NCBI GenBank assembly: GCA_001643675.2 | Contig: LSRY02000007.1 | Span: 558,001 to 622,000, forward strand | DNA from: Monocercomonoides exilis PA203 | Lineage: Eukaryota; Protista; Preaxostyla | DNA length: 64,000 nt | Direction of reading: 5' to 3' | Shown here: positions 48,790 through 54,846 of the stretch, one piece after another | Numbering within the stretch: position 1 is the stretch's first letter | How the letters are laid out: each line of letters begins with the position of its first letter | Position numbers and translations under genes: made by a program | The notes under the pieces: model-generated | What the model saw: the letters and a program-made list of their open reading frames with translations, nothing else | The model's database searches: none | Told to the model about the DNA's origin: nothing

Positions 48790-50694
48790 ATGTCAATTAA
48801 ATCACAACAATCAACTCTTCAAACTCCTGTCGCAACTATAGAATGCGTGAAAAATTTATATGCTGTACCATCCGATATCTCTGAACCGATTTATGCATAT
48901 GCAGAGATTCGAACTCGAAAAAGTGAAATCAGCAATAAAGAAAAAAATCCAATGTCTATTGCATTGGTTATAGATTGTTCAGGATCAATGGAGCATGTTG
49001 GGAAGTTTAATTTTGCGATTGATGCGGCAAAGATGGCCGTTGAAAAGTTAAGTTCAAAGGATCAAGTTTCCGTAATTGCTTTTGAAACAGATGTAGCAAT
49101 TGTTGTTCCTCTTAAAAATGTTCTTGATAAAAATGACTTGGTTCATGAGATTGATAAAATAAGAATTGGTTCCTGTACAAACATTTCAGGAGCCTTAACA
49201 GTAGCGTTTGATGAACTTTCAAAAGCTCCAAAAGAAAATGTTAAACGAGTTATTTTATTAACTGATGGATACGCAAACGTTGGACTTACTAATACAGCCG
49301 ATTTGGTGGAGCTTGCTAAGTCAAAAAGGGATGTTGGAATAACTGTTAGCACGATAGGCTTTGGACTGGAATACAATGGTGATTTAATGCAAAGCATGGC
49401 ACAACAAGGAGGAGGAGCTTTTTTTGCTGTGCGATACGGTGAAACATTAGATCAAGTTATCGAGAATGAAGTCTGTGCGGTTGAAAATATCTTGACAAAT
49501 CACACGTCTCTTAAAGTTATTTCATCTCCATTTGTAGAGAAAGTTTCAATTATGGGGTATCCAGTTGAGTCTCAAAGACGCCTTGCAAATGATGATCTAT
49601 CAACAAACATCTCATTCCCTGACTTGCTGACGGAAGAAGTTAGAGAGATTGTGATTCGATTTGATGTTCGCAAAAATTCAATTGTTTTACCTGGAGCATC
49701 GAAAGCATCGTCTTCAACTGTTCCTCCAGCAGATGGAGCAGAGCAATCTTCAGCTGGAATAGACAAAGTCAAACTCGGACAGTTGGTTTTAAGTTACGTT
49801 AACAAAAAAGCAAGCAATTCATCAAAAAGTGATGAAGCAAGTTGTTGTTCAGCTACTCCTGAAGGAGAAAAGAAGGACGAAGCAAAATCAAAAGTCGAAC
49901 AGGACAAAAAAACGAAAGTTGAGCAAGAGGAAGTGGTGGAAAGCGAAATTTCTGTACAAGTAATCAATGATGCGAATGAAAGAGATCAGATTAACAGACA
50001 GCATTGTGAGTCTACAGTGAAGACTGCGCTGAAAGTGATGATCCGACAGGCTTCCGCAGAAAACGAAGAGGCAATGGAATGTTTGTCAAATCGTCAGTCA
50101 AATGAAACAATTGTGGCTCATCTCGACAAGGTGAATGAGATCACAGACAAGTTTCTCGTGTTCCTTAAGGAGAAAAGCGGACTGAGCAGTTCGATCGATC
50201 TGTATGAAAAGGCTCTGAAAGCTGTGGCAGACGAAAAGGCTCGTGTTGAATCTGTTCGCAAGCGTCTTAACGAGGCAAAATCAAACAACCATTTGCGGAA
50301 GAGGATGGTGCAAGGCACGCGACAGCGGGCGTATCTGGTGAACCAAGGCTCGATGTCTTCAGCTGCGTATGCGCTGCCTGAGAAAGAGTTGTACTCTGAC
50401 GCAGAGGATCTGTCTTGCTCGTCTGAAAGTGAAGATCATTACAAACATGTGAGGGGCTCAAGGTCGCCTACACGAAAGCGGAGCGTTTCCAGATCTGTTT
50501 CGAGATCACTTTCAGGATCTGTCTCAAGATCGCCATCTCCAGACACTGGCAGCGATTCTGGTTCCAGTGATGAATCATCATCTGCCTCTGATGGAGCTAA
50601 ATGGAATGTGCTTTCGATGTTCAAACCGAAGAAAGTTTGCGGCAAATGCAGAAGAAAAAGCAGGTCTTCTCGGAAAAGAAGTGGATCAATGTAA
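48790..50694 (+). CDS. von Willebrand factor A domain protein with Ser/Arg-rich tail, intronless
   Basis: MIDAS motif VIDCSGSM, TNISGAL, ILLTDGYAN and STIGFG..YN..LM. Confidence 0.9.
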   Translation: MSIKSQQSTLQTPVATIECVKNLYAVPSDISEPIYAYAEIRTRKSEISNKEKNPMSIALVIDCSGSMEHVGKFNFAIDAAKMAVEKLSSKDQVSVIAFETDVAIVVPLKNVLDKNDLVHEIDKIRIGSCTNISGALTVAFDELSKAPKENVKRVILLTDGYANVGLTNTADLVELAKSKRDVGITVSTIGFGLEYNGDLMQSMAQQGGGAFFAVRYGETLDQVIENEVCAVENILTNHTSLKVISSPFVEKVSIMGYPVESQRRLANDDLSTNISFPDLLTEEVREIVIRFDVRKNSIVLPGASKASSSTVPPADGAEQSSAGIDKVKLGQLVLSYVNKKASNSSKSDEASCCSATPEGEKKDEAKSKVEQDKKTKVEQEEVVESEISVQVINDANERDQINRQHCESTVKTALKVMIRQASAENEEAMECLSNRQSNETIVAHLDKVNEITDKFLVFLKEKSGLSSSIDLYEKALKAVADEKARVESVRKRLNEAKSNNHLRKRMVQGTRQRAYLVNQGSMSSAAYALPEKELYSDAEDLSCSSESEDHYKHVRGSRSPTRKRSVSRSVSRSLSGSVSRSPSPDTGSDSGSSDESSSASDGAKWNVLSMFKPKKVCGKCRRKSRSSRKRSGSM

Positions 50695-51960
50695 AATAGA
50701 GAGGTCACTGGTTCTTTGAGTGAATTAAACAGCGCATCATTTTGAAATTCTTTCAAATAAAAGAAGAAATGGTGATGAATGATTTGATGCGAAATTGAAG
50801 AGAAATTTTCAATGGAAAGCGCTCCAAAGAATGAAATGTAAAGTTTTAATTTATTTTATAAAGTATTTTTTCGAAGTTAAAAAGGAAATTTTTCATTGTG
50901 GTATATTTTTTTCTCTGAAATTTTGTTGTATTCTCTTCTCGTTGAGACTATTTTTTAGTTGATTACAATTATTTTAATAATCTTTTATTTCACTTTGATT
51001 GTTGATGTTAAGGATGCAAAAATTCATTTACAATTGAAAAAATATTCCATTGATTGAATATTTTCTTCAAATGAACGGCATCTTTAGCTCATTTCGAAGC
51101 TTCTCCGAAGAACAAGACGTGTTGATAGTTTTGTTTAACTCTTCTGAAGTTTCATTGCAATCAAAATTTTCCCTTCTTGATTTTTAATTTTTTATTATTT
51201 TCTTATTTTTATTAAAAAAATGATAAATAATTATAATGTTTCATACATGTTTCACTTTTTTTAAATGAAAGGTCAAAGAGATGTTTATGTTAGAACTACA
51301 TATATCCTTTAAATTGTGAATGAATGAATAAATAAATCTAATAGAAAATTATTCAAGTTTATTTGACTTAAAACAATATTCTCGAAAATAGTCACAAAAT
51401 CTTCTTTTCTTTAATTTTTTTAAAATGAAAAACATATTCAGCCTTTTGAATACCAACATTTGTGTTACGTATTACAACGCAAGTGCATCCTTTAAATAAA
51501 AACTTATCCAAATATTTGGAGATGCTGCAATGTTGATGTGAAACATTTGTGCGAAGTGTAAAAAAAATCACAAATGAAAATATTACAAATAAAAATATAA
51601 AAAAAAAAAAAAGAAAAAAAGAAGAAAAGAAGCGATTATTAATATTTTGATAAAAGCAAACGATAAACGATAACAATAGTCGCAAAATAAACTATTAAAA
51701 AAAGTTGCAGTGTTCAAAATAATGGATAACGTTCATAACTTGGTACAAACCATTATCATGAAAAATCTTTTGAAAATCAATTCGAAAAATTGAAGAACTT
51801 ATTTTTCAAAATAAGAAACACAAAAAGACTTAATATACAAGTTCTGATATGTGCAATATCATTTATATATAAAAGCATTGAAGAATAATAACCTAATTGT
51901 CAAGTTAAAATGTATCTCGTCCTTCATTTGCTCGAAAATATTTTTTTTTTCAAATATGGC

Positions 51961-52798
51961 TTAAATTTGATTCATTGGTGGATCAATGATCCTAAATGAT
52001 GCTTGATGAAGCAACTGATCATTGATAAACAGACGAAGCTCGTATTCACCAACTGGCCAAGCTCTTTAAGAAATAATATATAAAATTGTCAAAAAAAGAA
52101 GCAAAAAAATTTAAACAAACCTTGGAAGTTCAGCATGAGTATCAATAATGTTCATCAACAAGCTAGTCAGATTACATGCGACAATTTCATAATTTGGTGG
52201 CTAAAAAATTATTTGAAGTATTGTTAAAAATATGCGGATCGATAAAAAAGACATACAGCTGTAATGATCAAATTTTATCCATAAATGAAAAAATAAGATT
52301 TTAGTGCTTTAAAAACAATTGCTCTGAAATCCAAACCTACACCGCGAGAATCACTATTAAATGAATCAACAATGAATTATAAAATCTTACAAAAATAAAT
52401 TGAAAACACACTTGCAGACCCAAACGACCCTTCCGTATGAGCCAACCTAAAGCAAATAACATTTTAAAATAGAAATAAATTAACAGAAATCATACCAGAA
52501 CGTGCGATAAAACTATTCTTGCGTGAATCTTTGAGTCTATAAATTTTTGAGAATTAAGCCATCAAATAACAAAATAAGCAATACCAGTTGTATAAAATAC
52601 TCCATCAACTGGCTCGCTCGGAGCGCCAGTGTCATCGGATCTGAATGTCATTTACAAAAATACATTTAATGAAAATAAAGCAAATAGCAAATGTTGCTTT
52701 GGGGCAAACCTATAAAAAGTGACTGATTCGACTTTGATTGGCTTTGAATTATCGGAATCTCCTCCTTTATCTTTATCCTTACTTCCACCACAGCCCAT
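51961..52798 (-). CDS. 140-aa predicted dually acylated protein; exons 52798-52710, 52640-52585, 52536-52496, 52446-52412, 52353-52337, 52258-52257, 52200-52121, 52063-51961
   Basis: Seven GT-AG introns give 423 nt open from ATG to TAA: MGCGGSKDKDKGG...FYRSDDTGAPSEPVDGVFYTTDSKIHARIVLSHVLVGSYGRVVWVCNDSRGVAPPNYEIVACNL...ELPRAWPVGEYELRLFINDQLLHQASFRII... Confidence 0.85.
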
Positions 52799-53029
52799 TT
52801 CTTAAATTATGGTTGTTAATAATAAATCATTCAAAATTTATTTCAAAAACATTTTAAAATTTGCGCTTGATTAAAATTTCACATATTTCATTCAATTTTT
52901 GTTTGATATACCATTATTCAGTATTAAAAATATTTTTTTGCGAACTTTTGCAAAATGATTGATGTAGAATAAATCGTAAAAACAATTGGGAGGATTATAT
53001 TTTCCTTTGACATATCTTTTTGAACGCAA

Positions 53030-54213: not shown

Positions 54214-54846
54214 TTAATGTTTGACGGCTCTCATAACGCTTCTCCCTGCGACAGCAGCTTCAACACGATGAGCAACAACATCCCAGTCAATATGTTTCAA
54301 AATTGCTTTCACGTATGGGCCGCGACCTGTAGTCTTGTAATCAAGAACAAATGCATGCTCCCAACAGTCGATAAGAAGCAAAGGTTCAACATTCACCAGC
54401 ATTCCCAAATGATGTTCTTCAACCCATGTCACTGTACAAAGGTCAGCGCTGTGATCATAAAGAACAGCAACCCAACCAACTCCACGGGTAGAACCAGCAT
54501 TTTCAACCTCTGCAACAAATTTTTCAAATGAGCCGAAATATTTGACAAAGAAGTTCTGAACGGCTGATGGTGCAGTTGTGTTTGCGGGTGTCAAATTCTC
54601 GAAGAAAAGTTCATGCATATAAACGCCATCCACTTCAAATCCAAGTCTGCGTCTACGATCAATCAAAGCAGCTCCAGTGTGAGCACCGCTTTTGATCTCA
54701 CCAAGAAGGGCATTCGCATTTGTGACATATCCTTTGTACAGATCAAAGTGTTGGTTAATTGCATTTGCGGAAATGCCTTCCATGGGGGAAGCAAGAAGCT
54801 TAGCGAGCAATTCTTCATTAACTTTAAATGGACCTGGTGCAGACAT
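54214..54846 (-). CDS. sod: Fe/Mn superoxide dismutase, intronless
   Basis: Metal ligands in QHFDLY, MHELFF and IDCWEHA; GVGW motif; 210 aa. Confidence 0.95.
   Translation of the reverse strand: MSAPGPFKVNEELLAKLLASPMEGISANAINQHFDLYKGYVTNANALLGEIKSGAHTGAALIDRRRRLGFEVDGVYMHELFFENLTPANTTAPSAVQNFFVKYFGSFEKFVAEVENAGSTRGVGWVAVLYDHSADLCTVTWVEEHHLGMLVNVEPLLLIDCWEHAFVLDYKTTGRGPYVKAILKHIDWDVVAHRVEAAVAGRSVMRAVKH

Follow-up and report, generated by a model that had tools for sequence, protein, structure and literature searches.

The locus considered here raises a simple question: can an exon of two nucleotides be spliced and translated, or does the sequence merely imitate one? On the minus strand of the window (the whole 64,000-nt stretch of Monocercomonoides exilis DNA that was analysed), an acceptor CAG (52261–52259) and a donor GTATGT (52256–52251) enclose nothing but CT (52258–52257). 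The original prediction placed these two bases between introns of 78 and 56 nt, and re-reading of the coordinates matched it exactly. Recomputation likewise reproduced its statement that inclusion of CT gives an open frame, while skipping it from the same upstream donor leads to a stop after four codons. Between the preceding 17-nt exon and exon 7, which begins at 52200, there is no canonical 2-nt candidate other than CT. Such an arrangement (ag-NN-gt with both introns of at least 30 nt) arises in 8% of shuffles of the window interval, so that the motif at this locus alone proves little. Transcripts and related loci were therefore brought to bear on the question.

Gene structure

The gene, MONOS_3254, was reconstructed as follows.

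52710–52798, minus strand: exon 1, 89 nt, ATG at 52798; an RNA contig of run X3 spans 52710–52781 and joins 52710 to 52640
52641–52709, minus strand: intron 1, 69 nt, GT..AG; joint 52640/52710 in one contig
52585–52640, minus strand: exon 2, 56 nt; contig pieces from runs X3 and X4
52537–52584, minus strand: intron 2, 48 nt; joint 52536/52585 in two runs
52496–52536, minus strand: exon 3, 41 nt; contig pieces from three runs
52447–52495, minus strand: intron 3, 49 nt; joint 52444/52494 with the cut moved by two places, three runs
52412–52446, minus strand: exon 4, 35 nt, followed by the donor GTGTGT at 52411; contig pieces stop at 52412 in three runs
52354–52411, minus strand: intron 4, 58 nt; deduced from the 19 letters found between 52412 and 52200, together with the sequence
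52337–52353, minus strand: exon 5, a 17-nt microexon whose last base, G, opens the split codon; accounts for letters 1–17 of the 19 (X1, X3, X4)
52259–52336, minus strand: intron 5, 78 nt, GTTTGG...CAG, preceding exon 6; read from the sequence, missing from spliced contigs
52257–52258, minus strand: exon 6, the 2-nt microexon CT, the second and third bases of a codon for Ala (G+CT); last two of the 19 letters, three runs
52201–52256, minus strand: intron 6, 56 nt, GTATGT...TAG, following exon 6; read from the sequence, missing from spliced contigs
52121–52200, minus strand: exon 7, 80 nt, the best-conserved part of the family; contig pieces from three runs, translation and alignment A4
52064–52120, minus strand: intron 7, 57 nt; joint 52063/52121 in three runs
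51650–52063, minus strand: exon 8, end of the coding sequence (stop codon 51961–51963) and 3' UTR; contig pieces without mismatch, translation

The coding parts of the exons measure 89, 56, 41, 35, 17, 2, 80 and 103 nt, or 423 nt in all, corresponding to 140 residues and a stop codon. The other introns of the gene confirmed by RNA are 48–69 nt long. An in-frame GTAAGA donor at 52390, 21 nt beyond the donor of exon 4, is unused in the contigs. Taking together the evidence set out below, MONOS_3254 almost certainly encodes some 140 residues in eight minus-strand coding exons, of which the sixth is the dinucleotide CT at 52258–52257, constitutively included, translated and needed to keep the frame.

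Transcript evidence

The RNA evidence consists of assembled contigs from a single study, four runs of which contain part of the stretch; contigs of three runs (X1, X3 and X4) were compared with positions 51650–52850. Spliced contigs from all three match the locus with zero mismatches across 560–720 nt, including 414 nt in the piece 51650–52063, which reaches into the 3' UTR, and they extend some 50–60 nt past 51650 on the exon 8 side. All but the 5' 17 nt of the coding sequence is covered. The joints at 52710/52640, 52585/52536, 52496/52446 and 52121/52063 are all of the GT-AG type. All spliced contigs have the same 19 letters between 52412 and 52200, namely the 17-nt exon followed by CT as read on the minus strand, and this CT-bearing form reaches a contig depth of 100–260 in the three runs. 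Mature mRNA contains CT, with another exon on either side. This is the outcome of a check set beforehand by the original prediction: the spliced contigs contain the junction with the microexon included (17-nt exon, CT, next exon) and not the one expected from an alternative donor. The contigs cannot have been simulated from the annotation, given that these exons are missing from the public model.

No form skipping CT was found among the contigs of the same runs. One unspliced contig of depth 8 occurs in run X1; its loose end matches C48, another copy of the gene and the source of this contig. A search of the 82.3-Mb genome assembly, with up to two mismatches allowed, found no contiguous copy of the CT-bearing junction, and all gene copies inspected in the M. 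exilis genome are interrupted at this junction.

Conservation in the oxymonad gene family

Twelve loci of the family were compared: six copies from M. exilis, two from Streblomastix strix, one from Blattamonas nauphoetae and three from further contigs. Exactly one canonical ag-NN-gt was present at the same place in each of the 12. The enclosed dinucleotides are CT, CT, CA, CT, AA, TG, CG, CG, CT, CT, CT and CG, and the split codon specifies Ala in 10 loci (GCT, GCA or GCG), Glu in one and Val in one. In these 10 loci the dinucleotide varies between CT, CA and CG and Ala is preserved, as would be expected of a third codon position that is translated. The flanking introns, 41–98 nt and 39–80 nt long in the 12 loci, are otherwise diverged and unalignable; in an alignment of the 42-nt context (A3) only the AG, the GT, the donor's +4 position (T) and a single T farther downstream are invariant.

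The chance of finding such an arrangement in shuffled sequence lies between 0.01 and 0.29 for each further locus, and the product over 11 lineages, with the near-identical C48 copy left out, is about 2e-12, a value that serves only as a guide because the loci share descent. The same layout in 11 further diverged loci, together with the RNA contigs, puts the 2-nt exon beyond chance.

The surrounding architecture is less constant than the dinucleotide itself. The 17-nt exon with the same layout is found in 11 of the 12 loci, the exception being S. strix copy B, where it is fused to the upstream exons. This copy lacks introns 1, 3 and 4, and contig L016 lacks introns 1 and 3; both retain the two introns around the dinucleotide. 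In M. exilis copy C19, alternatives of 8, 11 and 47 nt would keep the frame besides the 2-nt candidate, and here family conservation favours the 2-nt reading of the sequence. Frame and conservation point to use of the 2-nt exon in the other 11 loci.

Several features of individual copies may be added. The C48 copy (L002, C48:447498-448326) is 91% identical to the window gene over its whole length, introns included, and its microexon context differs by one intron base in 42 nt. The paralogue MONOS_8606 (contig C10, L004:900-1740) is expressed, as its spliced exon 7/exon 8 junction occurs in two low-depth RNA contigs. S. strix uses a variant genetic code; its copy B (L012:2001-2659) contains in-frame TAA codons, rendered as Gln in the public model, which fits such a code.

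Alternative explanations

The most direct competitor to a 2-nt exon would be a single 140-nt intron starting at an in-frame donor 4 nt upstream, in which case ag-CT-gt would be coincidental and the protein would lack the Val-Ala pair. This donor, raised as a caveat in the original prediction, does exist, keeps the frame and looks the stronger one by metazoan standards. Its proposed use is another matter: direct joining of this donor to 52200 is seen in no contig of the three runs, in which the CT-bearing form has the depth of 100–260 given above. Only 6 of the 12 family loci have GT at the start of this donor, which in the window gene has G at +4, whereas all seven RNA-confirmed donors of MONOS_3254 read GT, then A, T or G, then T at +4. 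Because all seven share this T, the supposedly weak donor upstream of CT is typical here and the alternative atypical; the earlier caveat on donor strength leaned on a metazoan view of donors. As the sole or main form the single intron is refuted by the RNA contigs, and the probability that it accounts for the locus is very low. Minor isoforms, using the alternative donor or skipping CT, may occur, and rare ones could escape notice because contigs drop rare variants. It is also highly improbable that the CT transcripts stem from another locus, allele, processed copy or strain, or from an assembly error, with no 2-nt exon being spliced here. The RNA runs are labelled ‘synthetic metagenome’, and the genome does hold the 91%-identical C48 copy and more distant paralogues. 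However, the contigs match the window copy, 3' UTR included, without a single mismatch, whereas C48 is only 91% identical; C48 itself has the same interrupted layout, the junction has no contiguous genomic counterpart at up to two mismatches, and the same split recurs in eleven other loci from four assemblies and three further contigs.

One could also accept the exon as real and regard it as a regulated switch, skipping of which would lead to a premature stop and mRNA decay while inclusion tunes expression. Coupling of exon skipping to mRNA decay is known for other exons of a length not divisible by three, and skipping of CT does bring an early stop. Against this stand the contigs, where the inclusion form is alone and where run X1 yields an unspliced contig but no skipped one, and the flanks, which are unconserved apart from the splice sites. 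We consider such a switch unlikely, and prefer constitutive inclusion of the 2-nt exon.

Consequences for gene annotation

Models of the family were found with a profile of the last exon (A2) and then named by a second search, which identified the window gene as MONOS_3254, annotated with 121 aa. This model jumps from exon 4 to the middle of exon 7; exons 5 (17 nt) and 6 (2 nt) are left out along with 37 nt at the start of exon 7, at a cost of 19 residues. In the models of four other M. exilis copies, both S. strix copies and B. nauphoetae, the region is skipped, read through or frameshifted. Each of the models from M. exilis (five), S. strix (both) and B. nauphoetae thereby loses or garbles the part of the protein around the 2-nt exon. 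The expectation that standard annotation would miss this exon is borne out by all ten public or automatic models inspected, none of which contains it. The word ‘microexon’ is absent from the three genome papers, PMC8767320 and PMC6759080 among them. The error is systematic and argues for a microexon-aware re-annotation of Preaxostyla genomes, on which conclusions about gene loss in amitochondriate eukaryotes are based.

Comparison with other very small exons

Recursive splice sites, or zero-length exons, occur in long introns of Drosophila and vertebrates. They resemble the exon of MONOS_3254 in that acceptor and donor are juxtaposed and removal must be stepwise. They differ in leaving nothing in the mRNA and in lying within very long introns, whereas here two bases are kept and the introns are short. 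A recursive splice site at the window locus is ruled out, as the two bases stay in the mRNA.

In plants, 1-nt microexons in APC11 and VPS55 have been validated and had been missed by annotation, in the account given by PMC8831610 (and Guo and Liu 2015 as cited there). As described in that account, they share with the present exon a sub-codon coding length, GT-AG flanks, a requirement for the reading frame, long conservation and absence from annotation. The exon of MONOS_3254 has 2 nt rather than 1, belongs to a different gene family of a metamonad protist with introns of about 40–100 nt, and is found in every paralogue examined. Neuronal microexons of animals, of 3–27 nt and dependent on SRRM4 or PRP-40/PRPF40A (PMC8378409, PMC11648925), are likewise very small internal exons that strain the pairing of splice sites. 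Those are mostly multiples of three, alternatively included and regulated by tissue through intronic enhancers (PMC8378409, PMC11648925), whereas the length of the exon described here is not divisible by three, its inclusion appears constitutive and its flanks show no conservation beyond the splice sites. The 4-bp microexon of human MPC1 is also constitutive, not a multiple of three and needed for the frame; it differs in its length of 4 nt, its long vertebrate introns and its need for defined exon-definition regions (PMC9929638).

A full-text search for the phrase ‘2-nt microexon’ applied to a natural gene returned no paper, which is weak evidence of absence. The exon of MONOS_3254 is a well-supported addition to the rare class of ultra-short exons, within which it stands out by its family-wide and cross-genus conservation. 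An exon could hardly be smaller; it is constitutive, supported by RNA and kept in at least three oxymonad genera and many paralogues. It therefore offers a clean natural system for asking how a spliceosome copes with a donor that follows an acceptor after only 2 nt.

Splicing mechanism and origin

M. exilis has major-type GT-AG introns only and no minor spliceosome (PMC6759080), and the introns flanking CT are ordinary U2-type GT-AG introns. Each short intron is likely recognised as a unit, in which case the length of the exon between two of them would barely matter. The two flanking introns are probably removed one after the other, because a spacing of 2 nt leaves no room for the factors of the acceptor and those of the donor to be bound at once. 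No special helper element was found, either as RNA structure or as a conserved flank beyond the splice sites: the predicted fold of the 173-nt region was no better than that of shuffles (z = +1.6), and the 72-nt contexts of 11 loci gave z values from -1.35 to +1.58 and no common hairpin. A 10-nt inverted repeat around CT in the window was considered as a helper and rejected, as it is not present in other loci.

The arrangement is older than the split between Monocercomonoides, Blattamonas and Streblomastix and older than the duplications within the family. An origin of the flanking introns by duplication was discarded, there being no direct repeats between them. A wider and more speculative reading joins these points. 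Intron-by-intron recognition in oxymonads might be so strict that exon length has no lower limit; their genomes might hold a population of conserved coding exons of 1–4 nt missed by annotation; and the 2-nt exon of this family might have arisen from two introns gained 2 nt apart. The last step would imply intron gain after a bacterial transfer, because the only non-oxymonad relatives detected are intronless bacterial proteins, such as the lipoprotein L019 described below. We put this combined reading forward tentatively, and regard it as rather less probable than otherwise.

Encoded protein, relatives and neighbouring genes

The protein encoded by MONOS_3254 starts with MGCGGS. Acylation signals follow the rule M-G-x-x-x-S/T, and this N-terminus is likely a signal for N-myristoylation and palmitoylation (dual acylation). 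It is followed by one domain of about 110 residues, probably rich in beta-strand. The split Ala codon falls in a poorly conserved stretch between a conserved Trp block and the conserved exon 7. Pfam searches with single exons and public models gave nothing significant, DUF3859 appearing only below the threshold, and an Rfam search of the window gave no match.

A metagenome scan with exon 7 for further oxymonad loci and for spliced or intronless relatives confirmed none, and a scan with the family alignment detected only bacterial relatives of the domain. Among these, the metagenome contig L019 (L019:30-485) encodes an intronless lipoprotein of 151 aa with one copy of the whole domain, while P0001 and P0003 are intronless repeat proteins with 3–4 domain copies. 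Signal peptides and lipoboxes make the relatives outside oxymonads look bacterial, and the oxymonad family may have come from bacteria. Lipid anchoring is predicted in both the oxymonad and the bacterial group, with different chemistry.

M. exilis is an anaerobe without a mitochondrion. The gene is adjoined by a gene for an Fe/Mn superoxide dismutase (54214–54846, minus strand), intronless and encoding 210 aa with the Pfam domains Sod_Fe_C and Sod_Fe_N. On the plus strand, positions 48790–50694 encode a single-exon protein of 634 aa with a von Willebrand A domain and a Ser/Arg-rich tail.
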